Notes under the pieces: generated by a model
Database searches by the model: none
Told to the model about the DNA's origin: nothing
The model's input: the letters and a program-made list of their open reading frames with translations, nothing else
Program-made: the position numbers and the translations under genes
In this document: positions 1,136 to 63,751 of the stretch, one piece after another
How positions within the stretch are numbered: position 1 is the first letter of the stretch
Layout: each line of letters starts with the position of its first letter
NCBI GenBank assembly: GCA_013265495.1
Contig: MU061178.1
Coordinates: 1,215,681-1,279,680, forward strand
Length of the DNA: 64,000 bases
Direction of reading: 5' to 3'
Source of the DNA: Vicugna vicugna
Taxonomy: Eukaryota

Positions 1136-1988
1136 GCATGGCTGCTTTCCTTCGTGCCCACTCCTGTGGGGCAGGGAACTAAATGCAGCAGATGTACGAC
1201 TAGACCATTGTGCTCAAGTGCCTGAGGGTCCTAATTACACCTACAGAGGAACGCAGAGAGCAAAGGCGGGACCTGAGTCCTGGGGCCCCATCTGGCCACA
1301 GAGCTCTGGGGAACAAAGTACAGAAGTGATCGGGGGAAGGAGGTGAGTTTTCCTGGGAGGAATAATCATCACAGGGCTGTAGGACATGGACAGGTAGCTG
1401 GGATGGGTGGGGGAACAATAAACAGGCACTGTGCCATGCCCTGTGTGTGCTGCGCTGGTGCTTTTAGACGAATGAATGTTGGAGCCGACTAGGTGAGAGA
1501 GGCCAAGCCAAGAAAGGATGAGCGATGAGGTGAGACAGGTGTGAACAGCTCAAGGGACGGAGGACCCTAAACCCAGGGGCCCAGGTGTATTTAACGGCAT
1601 GGAGAATATTCTGGACTTTGAGGCAAGGGGTGAAACAATGGACGGTGTAGGGTTGAGTGCATTCACTTGTGTCCTTCATTGCTGACGTGGCCTGGGTGCC
1701 AGGCAGAGCCCTGAGAGACCCAAGAATGGCCTTGGGCGGGGAGGTGGGAGGAGACCCCTCAGCAGACGTACGGCACGCGCGTTCACAGGCTGTCCTCCTT
1801 GCCGTCCACGCTCCCTGGGGCAGACGGAGGCTTTTCAGCCTCACTCCGTACCTACTCAGCTCAGGGCGAGCTCAGCTGCAAGTTCTCTGCGTGTGCAGAG
1901 TTATGAGTCTCCTTCCTACCATCCCGCATCCCCCCCACCTCCACACCTAAACACGCCTTCCGGGAGCTTGGAGTAGTAGAGCATGCGG

Positions 1989-4505
1989 GCTTTGGAACCA
2001 GAGGACCTGGCCTGGACTCGTGAGTCTGTCTCTTTCTGTGTGACCTTGGGCAAGTGGTTTAAAGCTCAAGAGCCTCCATTTCCTGGTTCTGTCTGTCTGA
2101 TGGAAATAGTAATAGTCACTCTCCCCTTGCAGAGCAGTCACGTGGATCACACTGACCCACCGCCTGGGGAAGCGGGCACGACGTTAACCGAAAGCAGCAA
2201 GAAAACCTGACCTCAGGGTGACTGAGACCTCACTGGGCAGTGATGCCACTCCGTCCTTTCCCGTCTCCATCGGAAAACGATTTTGCAGCTACAAAGTGAC
2301 GAACAGACAGAGCTGAGGGCCCTGAAGCCTGTAACAGGAGAGAAGGCATCCAGAGAGCAACAGACACTTCAGATGAGCGTGTGTCTCCAGATCCCCACGA
2401 CTGGTTGCCCCGGGGCACTGCCAGATCTTGGGGCTGTCATTGCAGAAACACTGTCTGTAACAAGACAGCCACCAACTGGGGACGCACAGAGTGGGTGGCA
2501 CCTGCTTACAGTTGTTCCTATGAGGACCCGGGGGCCTCAGTGAGCTACAGGCTGAAGATGAGGTGACAGTGTGACAGGAAGCTGAGAGTGATTGTCAGGC
2601 TAAGTTGCACCACAGGGTCCCCGACAGTGGAGGCGGCAGCCCCACTGACCCTGCTCTCGGCAGGCAGGCCACGAGGGGAGGGAGGAGAAGACCCAGCTCC
2701 TGGCCCAGCGACCAAGCACATCAAGGCCAAGCAGACCAGGACAATGAACAGGGTCGAGAAACCGTTTCCTGTCAGAGGGACTGGGTGACACTTATTGGAG
2801 AAAGATGAGACAGCGTAGGGGTTACATAGTGGCCTTCAAATATTTGGTAGGGGAGGGACAGTTACTTCATAGGGCAGAAGAGGAACTAATTCATGGAAAT
2901 GAGAGCAGAGAGGCAGGTTTCAGCTCCGCGTGAGGGAGGATCTTACAGTCGGGCTCTGCCACACTGGAACATTCTGCTTTGCCAAGCAGTGGCTGCCATG
3001 CAGCTGGGGGGTTGCGTATTGTGGACCTTGTGCATGTACGTGAGGGTGGCCGTCAGTGCTGGAAGTGATGCTGGCCAACGCACAGCTCAGGAGAAGATAA
3101 AGGTTCATCTCCTAAACTTCAAATATTTGGGGAGGGTATAGCTCAGTGGCAGAGTGCATGCCTAGCATGCATGAGGTCCTGGGTTCAATCCCCAGTACCT
3201 CTACTAAAATAAATAAATAAACCTAATTACCTCTTCCCGAGACAAATAAAAAATCCCCCCCAACAAATTTAAAAAAAGGTGAAAAACAAAATAAATATGT
3301 CTTTAGTGTAGAGTCATGCACTGATACCCAATACTTGTAATGGACACCATTTATTATGTGACCATGCCGCGGCAGGCACTTTAAATACATTTTATTTTCT
3401 AGTTTTACCTGATTAGAATCCAACCGCATCCAGACAAGAGGTAGTGAAGTACACTGGAGAAAGCATCGGGGTTTGGCCTCAGATGGACTTGGGCCTGCAT
3501 CCCTCTTTTGCTGTTGCTAGCAGGGTAGTTGTAAGCAAATTTCTTAACGTTTTTGACCTGTTTCCTCAATTGTTTAATAGGGATAAAAAATATATCTGCC
3601 TTATAACATCCTGAAAGTTAGATGAGATCATGTATGTAGTACAGGGTAGGCATTCAGGGTTTTGTTCTTTTTTTCTCTGTCTCTCTGGCCACATCTGAGG
3701 AAAACTAGCACCCGAGAGGAAACAGAGCTCTGTCCTTACGGTAACTCCGTTCCTTCACATTCAGCCAAATCTTAGGCTGGCTTTCCGGGGTCCTGAGCAT
3801 CAAGTGTGACGCAGTCAGGCCTGGGTTCTCCATACACTGTCCACTCGTCAGCCAGTCACAGACTCTCCCTCCTTCTCCCCTCTCTCCTGTCCAGATCCTG
3901 GGTTACACGCTGGGAAGCTCTTAGACTTGATCTGGTCGAGTCCAAGGGCAATTCCTTTCACCAGGTAGTGATTTGCGCTTGGGACGCTCCCCTCCGGAGT
4001 ACGCGCAGGCGCGCGGCCATCCCGTGCCCGCCCTCACTGCGAGCATTGACCTCCGCACTTGTCCAGGCGGCCATTCATAGAACACACAGGGCACACGGAG
4101 ACGTCGGGGAAGGAAGAGCCCTGAGCGGGAACAGGTGTTTTCTGTCCCAGGGCTAAATTCCCACAACCTCTGTCCAGGAAGAGAGTGTATTTAAGAATGG
4201 TTTTGCTTTTGGTTCAGTGAAAACAAACGACTGGGATCAAGTTTAAAACAAAAAGTAAGTCAACTCAGAAACCGTCAAGTGAAGAGAAATAAATGCCCAG
4301 ACTTGTTTCTTTCAGGTGTAGCTGGGGACAGCGGCTGAGACTGAGCTGAGTCTGGGGGAGACCAGTAACCCACCCGCCGCAACAACCCTCTGCCTGCAGA
4401 CCAGTCCCTTCAGTCACGGGCTCGGGTGACTGGCCCCGGGGTTAGTGGATCAAGGAGAGAGATATGAATTCAGAAGAATCGCTTTGATCCTGCAAATCGC
4501 TCCCA
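1989..4505. repeat. Tandem duplication unit, copy 1 (2517 bp), in FCRL6 intron 1
   Basis: Near-identical to 4507-7017. Duplicated ORF-track entries are offset by 2518 then 2512. Confidence 0.97.
3129..3277 (+). mobile_element. Camelid vic-1-type SINE (inside duplication copy 1)
   Basis: GGGGAGGGTATAGCTCAGTGGCAGAG A-box, GGTTCAATCCC B-box, (TAAA)n-CCTAATTACC body and A tail. Confidence 0.92.
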
Positions 4506-4506
4506 A

Positions 4507-7017
4507 GCTTTGGAACCAGAGGACCTGGACTGGACCCGTGAGTCTGTCTCTTTCTGTGTGACCTTGGGCAAGTGGTTTAAAGCTCAAGAGCCTCCATTTC
4601 CTGGTTCTGTCTGTCTGATGGAAACAGTAATAGTCACTCTCCCCTTGCAGAGCAGTCACGTGGATCACACTGACCCACCGCCTGGGGAAGCGGGCACGAC
4701 GTTAACCGAAAGCAGCAAGAAAACCTGACCTCAGGGTGGCTGAGACCTCACTGGGCAGTGATGCCACTCCGTCCTTTCCCGTCTCCATCGGAAAACGATT
4801 TTGCAGCTACAAAGTGACGAACAGACAGAGCTGAGGGCCCTGAAGCCTGTAACAGGAGAGAAGGCATCCAGAGAGCAACAGACACTTCAGATGAGCGTGT
4901 GTCTCCAGATCCCCACGACTGGTTGCCCCGGGGCACTGCCAGATCTTGGGGCTGTCATTGCAGAAACACTGTCTGTAACAAGACAGCCACCAACTGGGGA
5001 CGCACAGAGTGGGTGGCACCTGCTTACAGTTGTTCCTATGAGGACCCGGGGGCCTCAGTGAGCTACAGGCTGAAGATGAGGTGACAGTGTGACAGGAAGC
5101 TGAGAGTGATTGTCAGGCTAAGTTGCACCACAGGGTCCCCGACAGTGGAGGCGGCAGCCCCACTGACCCTGCTCTCGGCAGGCAGGCCACGAGGGGAGGG
5201 AGGAGAAGACCCAGCTCCTGGCCCAGCGACCAAGCACATCAAGGCCAAGCAGACCAGGACAATGAACAGGGTCGAGAAACCGTTTCCTGTCAGAGGGACT
5301 GGGTGACACTTATTGGAGAAAGATGAGACAGCGTAGGGGTTACATAGTGGCCTTCAAATATTTGGTAGGGGAGGGACAGTTACTTCATAGGGCAGAAGAG
5401 GAACTAATTCATGGAAATGAGAGCAGAGAGGCAGGTTTCAGCTCCGCGTGAGGGAGGATCTTACAGTCGGGCTCTGCCACACTGGAACATTCTGCTTTGC
5501 CAAGCAGTGGCTGCCATGCAGCTGGGGGGTTGCGTATTGTGGACCTTGTGCATGTACGTGAGGGTGGCCGTCAGTGCTGGAAGTGATGCTGGCCAACGCA
5601 CAGCTCAGGAGAAGATAAAGGTTCATCTCCTAAACTTCAAATATTTGGGGAGGGTATAGCTCAGTGGCAGAGTGCATGCCTAGCATGCATGAGGTCCTGG
5701 GTTCAATCCCCAGTACCTCTACTAAAATAAATAAATAAACCTAATTACCTCTTCCCGAGACAAATAAAAAATCCCCCCCAACAAATTTAAAAATGAAAAA
5801 AAGAAACAAAATAAATATGTCTTTAGTGTAGAGTCATGCACTGATACCCAATACTTGTAATGGACACCATTTATTATGTGACCATGCCGCGGCAGGCACT
5901 TTAAATACATTTTATTTCCTAGTTTTACCTGATTAGAATCCAACCGCATCCAGACAAGAGGTACACTGGAGAAAGCATCGGGGTTTGGCCTCAGATGGAC
6001 TTGGGCCTGCATCCCTCTTTTGCTGTTGCTAGCAGGGTAGTTGTAAGCAAATTTCTTAACGTTTTTGACCTGTTTCCTCAATTGTTTAATAGGGATAAAA
6101 AATATATCTGCTTTATAACATCCTGAAAGTTAGATGAGATCATGTATGTAGTACAGGGTAGGCATTCAGGGTTTTGTTCTTTTTTTCTTTGTCTCTCTGG
6201 CCACATCTGAGGAAAACTAGCACCCGAGAGGAAATGGAGCTCTGTCCTTACGATAACTCCGTTCCTTCACATTCAGCCAAATCTTAGGCTGGCTTTCCGG
6301 GGTCCTGAGCATCAAGTGTGACGCAGTCAGGCCTGGGTTCTCCATACACTGTCCACTCGTCAGCCAGTCACAGACTCTCCCTCCTTCTCCCCTCTCTCCT
6401 GTCCAGATCCTGGGTTACACGCTGGGAAGCTCTTAGACTTGATCTGGTCGAGTCCAAGGGCAATTCCTTTCACCAGGTAGTGATTTGCGCTTGGGACGCT
6501 CCCCTCCGGAGTACGCGCAGGCGCGCGGCCATCCCGTGCCCGCCCTCACTGCGAGCATTGACCTCCGCACTTGTCCAGGCGGCCATTCATAGAACACACA
6601 GGGCACACGGAGACGTCGGGGAAGGAAGAGCCCTGAGCGGGAACAGGTGTTTTCTGTCCCAGGGCTAAATTCCCACAACCTCTGTCCAGGAAGAGAGTGT
6701 ATTTAAGAATGGTTTTGCTTTTGGTTCAGTGAAAACAAACGACTGGGATCAAGTTTAAAACAAAAAGTAAGTCAACTCAGAAACCGTCAAGTGAAGAGAA
6801 ATAAATGCCCAGACTTGTTTCTTTCAGGTGTAGCTGGGGACAGCGGCTGAGACTGAGCTGAGTCTGGGGGAGACCAGTAACCCACCCGCCGCAACAACCC
6901 TCTGCCTGCAGACCAGTCCCTTCAGTCACGGGCTCGGGTGACTGGCCCCGGGGTTAGTGGATCAAGGAGAGAGATATGAATTCAGAAGAATCGCTTTGAT
7001 CCTGCAAATCGCTCCCA
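4507..7017. repeat. Tandem duplication unit, copy 2 (2511 bp)
   Basis: Junction ...gctccca-a-gctttggaacc at 4505-4507. The unduplicated flank resumes at 7018 (gctccca|tggacag). Confidence 0.97.
5647..5802 (+). mobile_element. Camelid vic-1-type SINE (inside duplication copy 2)
   Basis: Head and body identical to 3129-3277; only the A-rich tail differs. Confidence 0.92.
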
Positions 7018-9820: not shown

Positions 9821-10166
9821 NNNNNNNNNNNNNNNNNNNNNNNNNNNNNNNNNNNNNNNNNNNNNNNNNNNNNNNNNNNNNNNNNNNNNNNNNNNNNNNN
9901 NNNNNNNNNNNNNNNNNNNNNNNNNNNNNNNNNNNNNNNNNNNNNNNNNNNNNNNNNNNNNNNNNNNNNNNNNNNNNNNNNNNNNNNNNNNNNNNNNNNN
10001 NNNNNNNNNNNNNNNNNNNNNNNNNNNNNNNNNNNNNNNNNNNNNNNNNNNNNNNNNNNNNNNNNNNNNNNNNNNNNNNNNNNNNNNNNNNNNNNNNNNN
10101 NNNNNNNNNNNNNNNNNNNNNNNNNNNNNNNNNNNNNNNNNNNNNNNNNNNNNNNNNNNNNNNNNN
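9821..10166. other. Assembly gap (346 N)
   Basis: Run of n. Confidence 1.
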
Positions 10167-10270
10167 ACATTTTCAAATCTCCAGCTCCCAATTTATCCCT
10201 CACCCCACCCCCCCACAACCATAAGTTTGTGTACCATGTCTGTGAGTCTATTTCTGTTTTGTAGATGCGT
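10167..10270 (-). mobile_element. Cetartiodactyl-type L1 3' UTR fragment running into the gap
   Basis: caatttatccc...caaccataagtttgt...gtctgtgagtctatttctgttttgta is the antisense of the L1 3' UTR also seen at 54073-54666. Confidence 0.8.
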
Positions 10271-10444
10271 GCATTAGCCCTCATTACTCAGGGTCAGCTG
10301 GCAGGAGAGCATCTGTGGGGGACAATGGCTTCTGGGGGTGGGAAGATTCAGGGCCACTCCTAGGAGGTAAGAGGGGAGAGCAGCGTAGCTGGGGCTTGGG
10401 GGCAACTTTGGGCATGGAGACATGGTGTGCCCCAGAGCCCACTC

Positions 10445-10610
10445 ACCCGAGCTTAAATCCTTGTTCTGGATAATAATCTGCTGAGATCTTGGTGAAGTTT
10501 CTAACCTCTCTGCACCTCAGGGTCCTTATCTCGAAAGTGGATAAACGATTGCACTTGCATTACTGGTTGTTAGGAAGGTTACAGGAGATAACGTGGGAAA
10601 CGCTCAGACA
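10445..10610 (+). mobile_element. MIR SINE
   Basis: aagtttctaacctctctgcacctcag...ggttgttaggaaggttacaggagataacg, MIR core pattern. Confidence 0.7.
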
Positions 10611-10624
10611 GCGCCATCTAGTGG
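10611..10624 (-). promoter_or_regulatory. CTCF consensus site, reverse orientation
   Basis: Minus strand CCACTAGATGGCGC is a full match to CCASYAGRKGGCRS. Confidence 0.7.
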
Positions 10625-10805
10625 AGCTTTCTGTGATGATGGAGATGTTCTCTGGGCTGTCCAGTTCAGTAGTTGTGAGCCACATGGAGCTACCTGTGGT
10701 TGGCTAGTGATACCGAGGAACTGAAATCTTAATTGTTTTTAATTTTACTGAATTTAAATTTAACTAGCTGCAGGTGGCTAGTGGCTACCATGGCAAATAC
10801 TGCAG
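10625..10805. mobile_element. MER3-like hAT-Charlie MITE
   Basis: ctttctgtgatgatggagatgttct...gaggaactgaaat...gtggctagtggctacc. Confidence 0.8.
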
Positions 10806-13800
10806 GCTTAGAACAATGCCTGGCAAGTGGGACGTGCTTGCTAAAGATTAGCTCTGGTTACAAGGAAAAGAGTCAGGAAGCCTTGGGCCACCAGAACTTT
10901 CCTTTTAACCTTAGCTTTTACCGGTAAGGCGCAGAGAGGTGAAGTAATTTGCGCAAAGGTACTCAGTCATAAAGCCTGCTGGGATCGGGGCCACGTCCCG
11001 AGCTGAGACTGGAGGCCAAAGGAAAGACTTGACATCATTTCTCTGGGTGAAGTCTGGAAGAGAGAACAAACTGAGGAAATTTATCAAGAGCCTAGAATTT
11101 AGGACAGGTGCTGTAAAGACTAGAAGTCCAGAGAAGGTGGAGCCAGACTGGGACTGCATCTCTGGGCCTGGCCTGCAGTGGGCAGAAAACGCCAGGAGGT
11201 ATCTGGTCCCCACTCTCTTCGCCTTTTCCTTCTACAGACCTGGAGGGAGCTTCAACGGGGCAATAGAAACGTTTGCATCAGGTCTGCAGCGACCCCTTGT
11301 GGCTACATGGACAACTGCCCTCAGGGGGGAGTCTGTTAATACTGAAAAGCACATCTGGATTCATCCATCAAGCTTTATGCTTTATTTTTTAGCTCTTGCT
11401 CAGTGAGCAGTCCATCCCTGCCTCTGGGAGCTCAGGAGGAGACAGGCATATACTCAGGGTAGTCTTTGTGCTTCTTAAAGCATTTTTTCATGCCTCCATT
11501 ATCCTATTTTATCACACCGAATTGTATTTGTTTTACTGTCTCGCTCTAATTCCAGTCTGTGATTTTCCAGAGCCAAGGGCCAAGTCTAATTCATATTTGA
11601 GTCTCCAGACCTGGCACAGGAAGAGCTTTCAAGATACACCAAAGTATAATTTTTAGACATTCTGGAGTCAGAAAGAGCTGGGTTCTAATCCTGCTTCTGC
11701 TACTTACTAAGCAGCAGAGGGAGCGGAGGGTGACTTACTCTCACTAACCTCAGATTTTAAATCTGTAACATGGCAACAAGAACATTGATTTCTAGGATCG
11801 TGGAGAAGATTAAACTTGTGCACATACAGTATCTTGTACACTCACCCTTTTATCTTTGCAGGAGCCTTGTGGTACCAGTGCTATGTGAACCTTCTCTCCC
11901 TTGAGTTTGGTCACGTGATCTCAACTGGCTCTTTCCCATGGATGCTTCTGAAGGATGCGCAAATCTCTTTCATCTTCAAACCAAACCGTTCCAGCACCCC
12001 TTCTCTGGACTCCACACTCGCCGCGAGCCCCATTCACAGTCCCTAGACTTCAAAGAGGTGTATGGCTGCCTTTCCCAGGCGGGGTTCTGAGCGCTGCGGG
12101 ATCTCAAATGGTTGCAGGTGTTAGAAGATATTGATCATCTCAGTCCTCAGGGGACCTGGGTGGGGCCACACTGCCAGCAGGGGCAGCCTTGTTCAATGAC
12201 CTGATGTTCCACGGAAACACAACTTCTCTATGTGCCACAAAGCGAAAAGGTCTGGGAGACGCCGGTGTGTAGTTTCCTGTCTCCATCTGCTCCCCTCTCA
12301 TTCATCCCTCACCTCGCCCCAGTCTGGCTTCAGTCCCCTTCACGTCTCCAGCACATCCCATGGACAGGTTTTGGCGCACATTCTGTTTGCCTGCTGCTGA
12401 TTGCTCCCTCCTTCCCTAAACCCTGGACTGACACCTCTCCTGGTTTTCCTCCGGGCTCTCTGGCCACTCCTTCCCATTCTCTGCAGGCCCTGCTCCCTCC
12501 TCCAGGGGCTTTGAAGAAGTTCCTCCGACCCCAGTCCCGAACCCTCTTCTCTTTTCACTCACAGTCTCTCGCTAAACATTCTCATCTGTGGTTGTGGTTT
12601 AAATGATCGCTTCTGATGCAGTGAACGACTCGCAGATGTGTCTTTGTAGCGCAGGCCATAACCTTGCATTTAAGACAGGAAACTGCTTACCGGAGGGCTC
12701 AGAGGTTTCTCAAGCCCAAGACTGAACCCAGCCTCTGCCTTCTACCCTGGTCCGCTTCCGGCGTTCCCGGTGTTTGTCCGCAGCACCACTCACCACCCAG
12801 CCATGCACGTCAGGAACCTGGGGTCATGACTCTGATTTGCCCCAAAATGCAAATCAGCCCAGCGAGAATGTTCCCATACCCTGACCCTTTCAGATAACAG
12901 GGATCTTGTAGGTGTGCCTGCACATGTGCTTTGTATTTCCAATGTTTGCAGTTTCCCCACTGCCTGCCCTCACTGTCAGCCTGACCTAAATCCCAGTCAT
13001 GTCTTAGAGTTCAGTTTCTATATCCATTCCTGTGGAAGCTCCTTCCTGACCCCTGCCCCCGACCCAGGCTGGCTTAGCTGCACATATACCTGTCTCAGTG
13101 TTTAGCACATCTGTCTGGCATTGTGCTGACGCCCTGGGTGCCTTCCCCTGCCCAGGACTGCAAGCTCTCTGAGGGCCCCCGGCACATTTGCCTTGTCCTC
13201 TGCGGTGCCTTCAGTGCCTGGCACAGAGCATGTGCTCAGCAAATACGTGTGGGACCGACACTGAGATAGAGCGGAGGCCCCCCTCTCACTGGTCCTGCTC
13301 AGAGACAGCCAGCGAGATGGCTGCTGAATCGTCACTCTTCTACCCTTTCTCAGGTCCTCTCACCCTCCATTCTCTTACTCATAAATAAGTGGATTTTATG
13401 GTGAGAGCCCCCTACCTAAAGGTGCTTGGTTGACTCTGAGCTAGCCAGTATCCAAATAATCCAGTGTCTCTATTCCTTCCTTCCTGGCAGTGGGAGATGG
13501 TCAATTTCTTGCGTGGGGAGGCGGGAGGGGGCTTCCATCTACTCTCAGTAGTTCCTTTGAATCACAACACTACCCCTCTACTTCCTTACCTTTAATTGTA
13601 TACATACCTGTTACATTTCTCCGTGCACGCATTTCCCTGGGTTGCACGTTTAAATGTTTGCAGTTGTGCTTCAGCTTAGGGCAGCCTTGATGAGAAGCCT
13701 GTGGTCACCAAAAGCCGCCTTAGAAATTAGGGAATGGCTCTGTAGAAGGGGCTGGTAACAGGTGGAGGCACATTCTTCCCTGGAGATTGAGGGAGAAAAG

Positions 13801-27207: not shown

Positions 27208-27393
27208 TTATTTAGTTCGCTGGTAGAACTGGAAGACTGCTTTCTCCTGCTCATAGGTCTCGATGGAGCCAGGTCGGAGGCGCCGTATCTCAGCGATGGC
27301 GTCTCCTGCAGCCAGTTTCCGCTCCTTCAGCAGGTAACAAGCCAGCATGGTGCCCGTGCGGCCAAAGCCCAGGAAACAGTGCACCCCCACCGC
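27208..27393 (-). CDS. DUSP23: DUSP23 (VHZ) last coding exon: AVGVHCFLGFGRTGTMLACYLLKERKLAAGDAIAEIRRLRPGSIETYEQEKAVFQFYQRTK*
   Basis: ttcacAG acceptor at 27395-27394, HCx5R phosphatase motif, TAA at 27210-27208. Near-identical to human DUSP23. Confidence 0.98.
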   Translation of the reverse strand, partial: AVGVHCFLGFGRTGTMLACYLLKERKLAAGDAIAEIRRLRPGSIETYEQEKAVFQFYQRTK

Positions 27394-27668
27394 CTGTGAA
27401 TGGGGGAGCCAGATGGGGTGGAGCCCGACGCTCGCCCAACACTCTCCTGCTCCTTACTTGGGCTAGTCTCCTGTCTGTAGCTGCTCCTTCTAGGTCAGGA
27501 CCAGGACTCTGCATACACCTCAGGCTCTCAGGGGCAGGAAGTGACATCCAAGTCACAGAGGGCTATCCTATACTTGGTGGCTTAGAGGCCACCAATCACC
27601 TTCTTCTAAGTGGCTGGTTTCCAGTTCTGGGCTTCTTGTCTGCCTCACACAACCCCCTCTGCTCGCGC

Positions 27669-27955
27669 TGTCCAGTGCAGAAGACACTGGCCACGTGTGG
27701 CTACTGAGTACCTGAAATGCTGCTAGTCCAAATTGATATGTGACGTAAAATGTAACCAGATTTTAAAGACGTAGTACAAAAAAGAATGAACATATCCTGT
27801 CAAGAATTAATTTTATATTCATTATATGTTGATAACATTTTGGACTTACTGGGTTAAATTATATTATCAAAATGAATTTCTCCTGCTTTTTTTTTTTTTA
27901 CCTTTTAAAAATGTGGTTGCTGGAAACTAAAATTATATATGTGGCTCCACTCCAT
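27669..27955. mobile_element. MER33-like hAT-Charlie element in the DUSP23 intron
   Basis: ggccacgtgtggctactgagtacctgaaatg...aattatatatgtggctc. Confidence 0.8.
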
Positions 27956-28306
27956 TTGCTCAGAGCTTGTCCTGTAGACTGCTCAATAGCCCCTGAGTTC
28001 AACCCCCATCTCTCCCAAGTCTGTCCACCCTTTCTCCTTCTTGACTCATAAAATTAGCTGGTTCTTCCTTCCCTCTCCTGGAGCCCAATTCACACTGCTG
28101 GGCCCCTTTTTCACTCCTTCCCCTTACCGCCCCGCTCCGCTCCCCTTCGTTTTAAGTCCTGGTTGCACTCTTCTGGGCCCATGGTCTTCCTCCAATCTCT
28201 CCGAATCCAGCTAAGTCATTCCCGGCCCTGAACTCTCCGGCTCCGCCCGTGTCCCCGCTGACCCCTTCCAGGTCCCTCCCCCGAGGCACATATCCAGCCG
28301 GCTGAC

Positions 28307-28573
28307 CTCTCCCCGGGCGTTGGCCTCGTCCACTATCTGCACGAAGCGGTCGATCTGGTCGGGGGCCGGCGGGCAGAAGTCTGGGATGCGCAGTCGGTGC
28401 AGGGTGAGGCCGGGGCAGCTGTCGCTATGCGGGGGCCCCCGCTCCGTCAGTGACACCAGGTGCCGGACACCCTGGTCCAGCAGGAACTGGTAGTGGGCGG
28501 GGAGCCGGGGCAGCGCCAGCCCCGCAAGCCGGCCGGGGAGCACCCACGAGAAGTTGGGGGGCTGCACGCCCAT
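28307..28573 (-). CDS. DUSP23: DUSP23 first coding exon (MGVQPPNFSW...DEANARGE, 89 codons)
   Basis: ATG at 28573, GAG|GTCAGC donor at 28307/28306, phase 0. Joined CDS is 150 aa, as in human. Confidence 0.98.
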
Positions 28574-54666: not shown

Positions 54667-55205
54667 AAAAAATAGCCCACGTTAATTTTTCAGTGATGGA
54701 TTTTCTACCTTAAGCGCAGAGGTCCTGCTACCTGCCTACCTTGCCAACTCAGCATTTGCGTATTATTTTTATGTTAATGACATGTAACAAAGAAGCTATT
54801 GTTTCAGATTTTCATTTTTTCCAGTCTGTCCCTGTTATTACTTGTTGGTAGGGACAAGTCACCCCATTTAAGCAACAGTTTCCTCATCTGTAAAATGAAG
54901 GCCAGAACATGCCCTGAGGACAAGTAACTTACTTAAGACACAAGCCAATCCCTGGCGGAGTCCTAGGTGCACCCAGGCCTCCTGCTCCCCTCCTCATGTC
55001 TTTTCTGATGACAACAGTAACTCACAGCTTGTTGGGAAAATCGGATTAGGTGATGTGCTGAGAGGCATTTTATGCTCTGAAAAGTGACACAAAGATCTTT
55101 GTGATTATTGCTAGGGATTTACGCTCCCTAACAATCCTAGTGACAGAGTGAGGCCTTTACTCTTAGAGAAAATTACTTTGCTTCACTATTTTGTTTCTCT
55201 CACAG

Positions 55206-55788
55206 ACCTCACGGGAATGGCTTTCAAGCTTTTTAAAGACTCAACTAATACTTATGAGGTTTTAAACTACAGTTGATGAAGCTTCTGTTGGCTTTTCCCA
55301 GCATCTGCATCTTCTCTGATCTCTCTGTCAGCTAGAGTTAGCTTTCCTCTGCCTCTGGGGACCACAATAATAATATCATCCCTTTTAGGTACACCATCTG
55401 TGTGTGTGTGTGTGCGCGCGCGCGCGCGTCTGTGTATCCCTGCCAAGAGTCCCAAGTACCCCTTGTGTTCCTATTTTACATCTATGTGACTCAGAGAAAG
55501 GCTCAGATTTTGTTGAGTTCTATACAAATAAAAACCCTCTAGTGAGAAAGACTGTGAAGAAAGAACATTTTGAGGAGACAGAGGCAAAGATGATCTTAGT
55601 GCAGGAACAGGCTTCCTTTGGTGGGGACCAGGCTTTGGGGGAGATGATGGACAGACAAACATGTGAGGCATTGTTTGTCCCTGAGGGATTAACACTGTCC
55701 ATGGTGGTGGGGACTTTGGTTCTAACGTCCTGGACTGGCTGGTGCTGATGTAGGAGGCACGTGGCAGTGTTCCCAGCTGTGGTCCTGG
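55206..55788 (+). pseudogene. Unprocessed CRP-like short pentraxin pseudogene, exon 2
   Basis: ctctcacAG acceptor then DLTGMAFKLFKDSTNTY../KLQLMKLLLAF..SDLS*S*../LHLCDSEKGSDFVEFYTNKNPLVRKTVKK..EAKMILVQEQASFGG../INTVHGGGDFGSNVLDW..*EARG..QLWS. Colinear with CRP exon 2, with at least 3 stops and several frameshifts. Confidence 0.9.
55399..55428. repeat. (TG)8(CG)7 microsatellite inside the pseudogene exon
   Basis: Direct reading. Confidence 0.95.
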
Positions 55789-56340
55789 GCCCTGGTGCTC
55801 TCAGAGGGTGGGGTCCTCAGGGTGCCTGCTGGAGGTGGCTCCTCCCACTTCTGTCTTGGGTTGTGGTGCTGTGCCACGGGTGTCCACACTGAGGGGCTGG
55901 CTTTCCCTTCTCCCTTTCTATCTGGCTTAAGAGCATTTCTGAGGGTCTTAGTGAGTTCTTGAGAAGAATGAGCTCCTTTAAGAGGTTTGGTCACCAGAAA
56001 TAATAGAATTGTAGGATTTTTAGAATCAAAGAGGGTCTCAGAAACCTTATTGTTCGAAATTCTTATTTTATAGATGAGGACACTGAAGCCCAGAGAGGTT
56101 AAATGATTCGCTCAGCTTTGGTAGCTTGATAGTATCTGTGTTAGGATGATAATGCAGGTTTCTTGATTTCTAATTAGACGCTCTTTCCTACTGAATCTTT
56201 TTGCAATCGGGAAGAGGATATTCTTTTAATAAATAACAATAGGAAAGTTAGGGCAGATTCAAGAATTATGTGATTTACTATCTGGCAGTAGTAGCCACTC
56301 TAAGAGAAAATGGCTCTAAGTTAGTTTTAAGAAACTTATT

Positions 56341-56470
56341 AGGGAAGGAATATGAAAAGCAATATACGCATGTATATGTTGACCGAAACATGATGCTGCA
56401 AACCAGAAATTGACACAACATTGTAAACTAAATCTACTTTAATAAAAAAGAATGCAAATAATAAAAAAAG
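56341..56470 (+). mobile_element. Short L1 3'-terminal fragment
   Basis: gaatatgaaaagcaatata...ccagaaattgacacaacattgtaaact...aataaaaaa. Confidence 0.75.
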
Positions 56471-62144: not shown

Positions 62145-63309
62145 AAGCCATAGTTTTGTTTGTAAAGACCCTTATGTCCCATTCCTAGTATAAGCCAAAT
62201 CAATGTGAATAAAAGTTTCCAAATTTTAAAAATAATACCACCAAGTCACTCTTTGCATGCCTTTTCTTCTCCATAAAAGAGGACACAATTTATTAAGTGG
62301 AAACATCTGTGGATTTTTCCCATCTGAAAGGCATAGGAAATCTGTCTACCACAATCTTTACCATAATCTGGTGAACAGTCTCTGAATGTCTCAGTTTCCT
62401 CATCTGTAAAATGGGGATAATGTACCTACCCTGAATTGTAAGGACTAACTGGGTTAATATGGGAATGCACTTAGAACAGTGTGTGGCATCTAGCAGAACT
62501 ATAGCTGTAATAGAACACAGCTACAGAACTGTTTGCTATTATCATTATTTTTATTATTACTATTATTATTTAGTCATTTCATTCACTATATAAGTTAAAA
62601 TAATGTTGGAACAGGGAATTGATTTAATGGCAGTGACAGACTTGGTATGTAAAATCCTTTACCTGTCAATGATGCACCAGGTATTATAATCTTTTCCATG
62701 TTTATGCAATATTTTCTATTTTTCACTAGAAAAATAGTGACCTCTTGAGCAATGCTCATTCTCATGATGCTCTCCAAGCCAACCCTGATAACTGTGCTTA
62801 AATGTTAAGCTTAGTGATAATTCTCCCAGTGCCCTTAGCTTTCCTTACAAAGAATTAATTGATTTAATTTTAGAGTCTGAACGTTCTGTAAATAATTATT
62901 GCACATTGCATTAGAGATTTTTTTCATATTATTGTTTGACAATTTTTTTAATGATGAGGATCACAAAGCAGAATTGTTATTAGAAAGAAACATGTGGTTG
63001 TATGTAAGATTCATTATGTTTAGTTTTGGTGTTTTTCTTTTAGTTCAACTTTGGTAGTCCTTGGAACGTTGGTTGGAAAACATCCACTATGTTTTTGTTA
63101 GAGCTTTGGTCTCTTACAAAAACCCCCAAACTGTAGCTTTACTGTGTGTCCAAGGGAATCCTCAAGTCTGCTTTCTTCAACACTCTCATTCTTCCTTAGC
63201 CATAGACTGACAAATTTAAAAAAATTTAAATGAAAAAAATGTTGACTCCTTTTACTAGAAAGTGACAGTGCAGTTCCCAAGGGAAATCAACATTGTATCA
63301 AACACGTCT

Positions 63310-63751
63310 GTGTTAGTTTCTTAGGGTTGCTCTAACCAAGCACCACAACCTGGATGGCAACAGTTCTGGAGGCTAGAAATCTGAAACCAAGGTGTCATCA
63401 GGGCCCTGCTTCCTCTGAAACCTGAAGGGGAATCCTTCTTTGCCTCTTCCCAGCTTTTGGTGGTTTGCCAGCAATCCCCAGCGCTTCGTAGTTTGCAGTG
63501 CATCCCTCCAATGGCTGCCTGTTGTCACCTGGCGTCCTCCATGCGTGTCTCTGGCTTCCCATGGCCGTCTTCTTCTAAAGATGCCGGTCATACTGGATGG
63601 GGGCCCATTCTACTCCTGTATGACTTCACCTTAATGTAACTAATTACACCTGCAGCTACCCTATTTCCAAATAAAATTACATTCTGAGGTACTGGGGTGT
63701 TAAGACTTCAATCTATATCTTTTTGGGTGGGACACAACTCAACCCATCACA
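63310..63751 (-). mobile_element. MLT1C/D-like LTR, antisense
   Basis: tgtgttagtttcttagggttgc...cagttctggaggctagaaatc...gggacacaactcaacccatcaca. Confidence 0.88.

Follow-up and report, generated by a model that had tools for sequence, protein, structure and literature searches.

Which gene left the pentraxin-like sequence that lies on the DUSP23 side of the CRP/SAP cluster in this camelid DNA: CRP itself, the pseudogene CRPP1, or a further member of the cluster? The earlier note, made from the letters of this DNA, had favored an extra, ancient short-pentraxin duplicate. In the analysis reported here, the locus (hereafter the relic) is very probably an unprocessed pseudogene of a third CRP-lineage short-pentraxin gene, non-functional and separate both from CRP and from the equivalent of CRPP1. 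The following features were recognized in the window, which is the whole 64-kb stretch of DNA that was analyzed.

27211-28573, minus strand: DUSP23, intact (exon 2 at 27211-27393, exon 1 at 28307-28573), a context gene
54966-55017, plus strand: possible relic of exon 1 (signal-peptide exon), with the ATG and the splice donor lost; weak
55018-55205, plus strand: intron relic, recognized by intron-tail homology and ending in the conserved acceptor tctcacAG
55206-55788, plus strand: decayed exon 2 (mature pentraxin coding region), readable across three frames only
55399-55428, no strand assigned: (TG)8(GC)7.5 microsatellite found with Tandem Repeats Finder, which replaces the coding part around the beta-strands 'GYSFTVGG'
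55789-55935, plus strand: CRP-type 3'UTR relic, recognized by local alignments

The three-frame reading of exon 2 starts with D-LTGMAFKLFKDSTNTYEVL, followed by KLQLMKLLLAFPSICIFSDLSVS, a stop, S, a stop and LSSASGDHNNNIIPF, and then by SLPRVPSTPCVPILHLCDSEKGSDFVEFYTNKNPLVRKTVKKEHFEETEAKMILVQEQASFGG; it continues with GDDGQTNM, a stop, GIVCP, a stop, GINTVHGGGDFGSNVLDWLVLM, a stop and EARG, and ends in QLWS. The longest stop-free piece (119 aa, 55389-55745) matched the Pfam family PF00354 (Pentaxin) with 30 bits and an E value of 5.1e-7 (cut-off 25 bits) and, among solved chains, human SAP (E 5.4e-8) and CRP (E 6.9e-8). In tblastn, a check that the earlier note had proposed, many CRPs aligned to the relic in two pieces scoring 75-95 bits together, the best intact protein matches being canonical CRPs, and no further pentraxin-like site was detected in the 64-kb window with about 230 pentraxins as queries. 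The pentraxin match in the window is confirmed and far above chance, and exon 2 is recoverable across frames, as had been claimed. The pentraxin signature H-x-C-x-S/T-W-x-S/T reads H-L-C-D-S-E in the relic, with the Trp gone, QEQD has become QEQA, and no intact pentraxin open reading frame with the signature and the calcium-site residues is left.

Lesions were read in the homologous frame after alignment to the intact exon 2 of dromedary, goat, and aye-aye CRP and of the hippo and ass CRP-like genes. The frame is shifted by 1-bp deletions after 55255, 55488, and 55638, by a 5-bp deletion after 55432 and by a 10-bp deletion after 55770, and it is kept by deletions of 3 bp after 55299, 12 bp after 55628, and 3 bp after 55678. 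Five stops stand in the homologous frame, namely, TAG at 55333, 55339, and 55751 and TGA at 55664 and 55682; those at 55333 and 55751 were formerly Tyr codons and that at 55664 a Trp codon. The ancestral stop codon is now TGG (55786-55788), the Trp of H-x-C-x-S-W was lost through the deletion after 55488 plus a change of TGG to TCA, and the missing NFEGS equivalent corresponds to the 12-bp deletion. With five stops, several frameshifts and the signature Trp lost, the relic is a pseudogene.

Much of this damage had been listed in the earlier note. Its frameshift at about 55260 proved to be the 1-bp deletion after 55255, and its TAG codons at 55333-55335, 55339-55341, and 55751, its microsatellite at 55399, the lost Trp, the change of QEQD to QEQA, the deletion of the NFEGS equivalent and the stop turned into TGG at 55786 were all seen again. 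The frameshift that it had placed at about 55688 was not: there is no indel at that point, and the frame changes at the 1-bp deletion after 55638, past which the homologous frame contains both TGA codons and the 3-bp deletion after 55678. The deletions of 3 bp after 55299, 5 bp after 55432, and 10 bp after 55770 are additional to that list.

The noncoding surroundings of exon 2 are also those of a CRP-type gene. The acceptor (...tctcacAG/AC) stands at 55198-55207, a 13-mer of the intron relic, agatctttgtgat (55093-55105), is identical to a stretch in the goat CRP intron, and 55166-55205 aligns to the final 40 bp of the CRP intron of aye-aye (z 3.7). In local alignments, 55811-55935 matched the 3'UTRs of camel, aye-aye, and hippo CRP within z 4.6-6.8, as it did those of the hippo gene of type B (a group of CRP-like genes taken up below) and of the aye-aye CRPP1-like copy, compared to z 0 for the 3'UTR of whale APCS. 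No A-run follows the 3' end of the relic. Intron and flanking noncoding sequence have thus been kept and a poly(A) tail is missing, as in an unprocessed pseudogene, and since intron sequence was retained, the relic arose by copying of DNA and not as a retrocopy. The acceptor, the unprocessed nature of the copy, and a C terminus and 3'UTR resembling CRP rather than SAP had all been proposed before and are upheld by these alignments. The exon 1 relic is suggestive only: at 188 bp upstream of the acceptor, it is plausible by position and in a MAFFT alignment and has no statistical support, as local alignment of goat CRP exon 1 picked 54966-55004 with a score of 27 (null, 18.6 ± 2.8) and the other four CRP exon 1 sequences gave no score above the null.

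The same relic was found in other mammals. A search of 1.84 billion representative proteins with the 119-aa piece returned five matches, four of them being frames of 70-137 aa that belong to this relic in further hosts, and no close relative with an intact gene was present among these representatives. Six contigs (L001 to L006; 1.3-4.1 kb), assembled from metagenomes or archived reads, are colinear with window positions 53.6-58.3 kb at 69-82% identity, several kilobases of noncoding flank included, and because the colinearity extends well into this flank they are orthologous host-genome fragments. In L001, Bov-tA and Bov-A2 SINEs are inserted within the relic, and we take these elements to mark its host as a ruminant; L002 and L003 have an L1 fragment in common, L004 begins in a tRNA-type SINE, and a screen of L002 to L006 for SINE motifs detected no element diagnostic of a host. 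The search for an orthologous relic suggested in the earlier note was therefore successful: no fewer than four other mammals, among them a ruminant, have the relic, flanked by colinear DNA and carrying lesions in common with the window.

Two observations were made alongside. Window positions 56345-56467 resemble an L1 3' end (...ccagaaattgacacaacattgtaaactaaatctactttaataaaaaa) and are missing from all six contigs, which points to an insertion specific to the lineage of the window. Eight short sequences in metagenome-derived protein collections (P0001 to P0004 and P0006 to P0009) are frames of 45-137 aa on the relic in contaminating host DNA, one with a weak Pfam Pentaxin match; they are spurious and not real proteins, and the relic explains these few pentraxin-like entries.

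The five relic copies formed a clade with 100/100 support, in which the window was sister to the ruminant copy (97/96). Both sides of the deepest split in this clade carry the 1-bp deletions after 55255 and 55488, the 3-bp deletion after 55299, the 5-bp deletion after 55432, the stops TAG 55333, TAG 55339, and TGA 55664, and the microsatellite, at the position of which every orthologous copy has a GT-rich run. Only the window and the ruminant copy share TAG 55751 and the 10-bp deletion after 55770, a nesting that is as expected, and three lesions are seen in the window alone, namely, TGA 55682 and, at 55628-55638, the deletions of 12 bp and 1 bp. Because lesions are shared across the deepest split, the gene was already dead in the common ancestor. 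Judging from these shared lesions, the relic was already inactive before camelids and ruminants split, and its inactivation is probably older than their ancestor.

The relic evolves neutrally, with a conservation no better than that of its flanks: identity was 82% in the relic versus 77-81% in the flanks for L001, 79.3% versus 79.9% for L005, and 73.7% versus 75.0% for L002. An excess of third-position substitutions is absent from the relic, and even intact pentraxins show only a weak excess. These values bear on the reading that the locus, although dead for coding, was kept as a regulatory element or noncoding RNA for the neighboring pentraxin genes. It would agree with such a role that the relic is recognizable in several lineages despite long divergence and that a precedent exists in CRPP1, for which an enhancer-like role has been proposed in a review (PMC7901964), but with conservation not above that of noncoding flanks, SINEs interrupting the ruminant relic, and L003 and the window showing large deletions confined to their own lineages, we regard this reading as improbable.

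The position of the relic in the cluster was considered next to its neighbor DUSP23. As DUSP23 lies on the minus strand, the relic is divergent from it, in agreement with the earlier note, and 26.6 kb separate the DUSP23 ATG from the relic. The window ends 8.2 kb past the relic and does not reach the first base of the dromedary CRP locus (L011), so that a CRP gene on that side would be separated from the relic by at least about 18 kb. With the published human gene order as the guide (PMC7901964, PMC11696572), the order would be DUSP23, relic, CRP, with CRP beyond the window end on the same strand. No description of a pentraxin pseudogene between CRP and DUSP23 was found in the literature searched. 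At the other end of the window, at about 1950-7000, identical six-frame translations reappear over long stretches at a spacing of about 2518 bp (2244-2540 and 4762-5058 are one such pair, 3797-4153 and 6309-6665 another), which is either a recent tandem duplication or an assembly artifact, where FCRL6 would be expected.

In the best protein tree, the relic belonged to the CRP clade (99/95) and, within it, to the eutherian CRP group (97/89). The eutherian group was a polytomy of four lineages, with marsupial CRPs outside: the relic clade (100/100), canonical CRPs together with mole CRPs (81/98), type B (83/86), and the aye-aye CRPP1-like copy. Type B consists of the annotated CRPs of ass, rhinoceros, hippo, right whale, pangolin, mustelids, and seals and of CRP-like genes of armadillo, sloth, manatee, and dromedary. 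A 2-codon insertion (..EL[xx]TR.YS..) is present in crown canonical CRPs, including that of elephant, and is absent from the relic, as it is from type B genes, moles, marsupials, SAP, and MPTX. The mole CRPs (Talpa, Condylura, and Galemys; P0167, P0178, and P0190), which stand among the canonical CRPs without having this insertion, may represent an early offshoot, a gene altered by conversion, or another paralogue that has survived.

The trees carry little phylogenetic signal, and the CRP affinity of the relic is suggested by the best tree, the best matches and the 3'UTR homology taken together. None of the placements tried was rejected in AU tests (p 0.16-0.61), with p values of 0.35 for a grouping of the relic with cetartiodactyl CRP, 0.18-0.31 with type B, and 0.16 with SAP plus MPTX. 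The tree called for in the earlier note thus agreed with CRP rather than SAP or MPTX as far as the best topology is concerned, and the AU test kept the SAP plus MPTX placement. The relic clade stands on a very long stem, with 0.38 changes per site for DNA and 1.32 for protein; this exceeds the length expected from simple neutral decay since a eutherian duplication and counts against the reading preferred here. Because the AU tests reject nothing, it is synteny, not the tree, that carries the case against orthology to CRP and to CRPP1.

For synteny, the window was compared to the CRP loci of dromedary (L011), goat, hippo (L007), ass (L010), and aye-aye (L012), those of goat and ass being CRP with 10-kb flanks. 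The 21-kb dromedary locus (CM016647.2) contains an intact CRP at 10001-10928 (P0235, 225 aa) and, 7.4 kb past it, the exon-1-like start of a second CRP-like gene (L011:18326-18385), and the dromedary has a second, 'low quality' CRP-like protein (P0234). In hippo, a frameshifted canonical-type copy (L007:127-746) precedes the gene annotated as CRP by 9.3 kb, and L007:17092-17709 was compared to the window as the downstream copy. In aye-aye, a frameshifted second copy (L012:18904-19564) shares the strand of CRP and follows it at a distance of 8 kb. The published position of human CRPP1 is past CRP, toward OR10J6P and APCS (PMC7901964, PMC11696572), and the position of the aye-aye copy agrees with it.

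The window was colinear with none of these CRP or CRPP1-equivalent loci of dromedary, goat, hippo, ass, and aye-aye. Only repeats and an exon match of 65-71% (68.6% for L011) are common to the window and the comparison CRP loci. A tRNA-derived SINE occurs in nine copies in the window, in three in the dromedary locus, and in none in the hippo, goat, ass, aye-aye, and whale loci, by which the window is marked as camelid. An orthologous dromedary region would be near-identical to this camelid window, and the relic is therefore separate from both dromedary CRP-like genes. In identity, the relic reaches 58.6% to dromedary CRP, 60% to aye-aye CRP, and 57% to the aye-aye CRPP1-like copy. A match between L010:1-290 and window positions 63254-63518 (70%) was considered as an overlap with the upstream flank of CRP and rejected, since the other matches of the ass locus are out of order, which makes it a repeat and not synteny.

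A further sequence was noted at the start of the dromedary locus. L011:1-340, which precedes dromedary CRP by about 10 kb and has the same orientation, represents the 3' end of another CRP-like relic, frameshifted and with a decayed ..SPNVLDW.. region, of which only the tail falls within the fetched locus. It was rejected as the orthologue of the window relic, with about 63% identity, non-colinear flanks, and different indels. An 11-12 bp segment of the 3'UTR (CTCTCAGAGGG-like) is common to L011:1-340, the window relic and its orthologues, and living CRP genes are without it.

These loci weigh on the two remaining alternatives. According to one, the relic would be orthologous to human CRPP1, the downstream CRP-like gene, and would have been brought next to DUSP23 by an inversion or by loss of intervening DNA; the earlier note had named such a relocation as what would overturn its proposal. 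CRPP1 and the relic are indeed both unprocessed CRP-derived pseudogenes in the DUSP23-CRP-APCS cluster and in the orientation of CRP, the 2-codon insertion is missing from the relic as it is from type B, and the AU test allows the two to be grouped (p 0.18). However, CRPP1 stands on the APCS side and the relic on the DUSP23 side, and the positional equivalents of CRPP1, at 7.4 kb from CRP in dromedary, 9.3 kb in hippo, and 8 kb in aye-aye, are not colinear with the window and no closer in sequence, the relic being less similar to the aye-aye CRPP1-like copy than to aye-aye CRP. Camelids also have a separate type B gene (P0234), and the relic does not occupy the site that marks orthologues of CRPP1 and type B, on the strand of CRP, 7-9 kb past it and with colinear flanks. 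Orthology of the relic to CRPP1 is accordingly very unlikely.

That the relic is the canonical CRP orthologue, decayed in this lineage by a unitary gene loss, is scarcely credible and was rightly ranked low in the earlier note: its orientation and side relative to DUSP23 are those expected for CRP, canonical CRPs are its best intact matches, and AU allows a grouping with cetartiodactyl CRP, but dromedary CRP is intact at a locus that does not overlap the window, goat CRP is intact with 10-kb flanks not colinear with the window while the ruminant contig L001 carries the orthologous relic, and the relic has neither the colinear flanks nor the 2-codon insertion of all crown canonical CRPs examined, so that a decayed CRP orthologue is in effect excluded. 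An extra ancient duplicate distinct from CRP and CRPP1, as originally proposed, is supported by the orthologues with shared lesions and by the non-colinear loci.

Among known genes, the relic resembles canonical CRP (type A, of primates, rodents, ruminants, pig, and camel) in having two exons, a phase-1 acceptor before Asp or Thr-Asp, a C-terminal ...SPNVLDW...QLW(S/P), and the same 3'UTR start, and differs from it in locus, in an exon 2 DNA identity of only 56-60%, and in its five stops and frameshifts. Type B genes belong to the same eutherian CRP group and likewise have no 2-codon insertion, but they are intact and, where the context is visible, lie 7-9 kb downstream of the canonical CRP position, non-colinear with the window. 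APCS and MPTX1 are short pentraxins of the same family, and MPTX1, the mucosal pentraxin, which is a pseudogene in human, is likewise a dead short-pentraxin gene; in contrast to these two, the relic groups with CRPs in the best tree and has a 3'UTR that is CRP-like, not SAP-like.

In the history that we propose for this pseudogene of a third CRP-lineage gene, a DNA-level duplication, tandem or segmental, inside the DUSP23-CRP-APCS cluster would have produced the gene, the copy taking along the intron, the whole mature-protein exon, and the 3'UTR. Frameshifts and nonsense changes would then have killed it in an ancestor of camelids, ruminants, and at least three further mammalian lineages. Neutral drift would have added lineage-specific deletions, extra stops, the microsatellite and, in the ruminant, the SINE insertions. 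The relic makes no pentraxin.

The comparison also brought out a second CRP lineage, seen in loci L007, L010, L011, and L012 and in proteins P0209, P0218, P0233, P0234, P0240, P0191, P0215, and P0228. It is the annotated CRP of ass/horse, rhinoceros, hippo, right whale, pangolin, mustelids, and seals, and where its context is visible it lies 7-9 kb downstream of canonical CRP, the place described for human CRPP1. Hippo reverses the state of aye-aye, having the canonical-type copy frameshifted and the downstream copy intact. The N-terminal half of the aye-aye downstream copy is closest to type B proteins (51-57%) and its C-terminal half to aye-aye CRP (74%, and 14/14 at the very end), a pattern that suggests gene conversion from CRP into this CRPP1-like pseudogene.

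On its own, the relic is an ordinary fossil with no gene function to explain. For the history of the CRP/SAP cluster, it contributes a third locus of the CRP lineage, on the side of DUSP23. The cluster once held more CRP-like copies, probably more than are now annotated, and the relic and the two living CRP lineages combined speak for birth-and-death evolution in which losses were reciprocal. Tentatively, and with the balance tipped slightly against it, the relic may be the third early eutherian gene of the CRP lineage (with L011:1-340 perhaps a fourth), different orders having kept different members of the cluster. If this is true, the canonical copy was kept by primates, rodents, ruminants, pig, and camel, the downstream copy, which is the human pseudogene CRPP1, was kept by horses, rhinoceroses, carnivores, whales, pangolin, armadillo, and manatee, and the upstream copy died early and may persist intact in some other lineage. 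What is called CRP across mammalian orders may then be more than one orthologous gene, and the name CRP would cover non-orthologous genes in different model and veterinary species; the CRP of horse, dog-like carnivores, and whales may correspond to human CRPP1 and not to human CRP. The comparative use of CRP as an acute-phase marker would be affected by this question of orthology.
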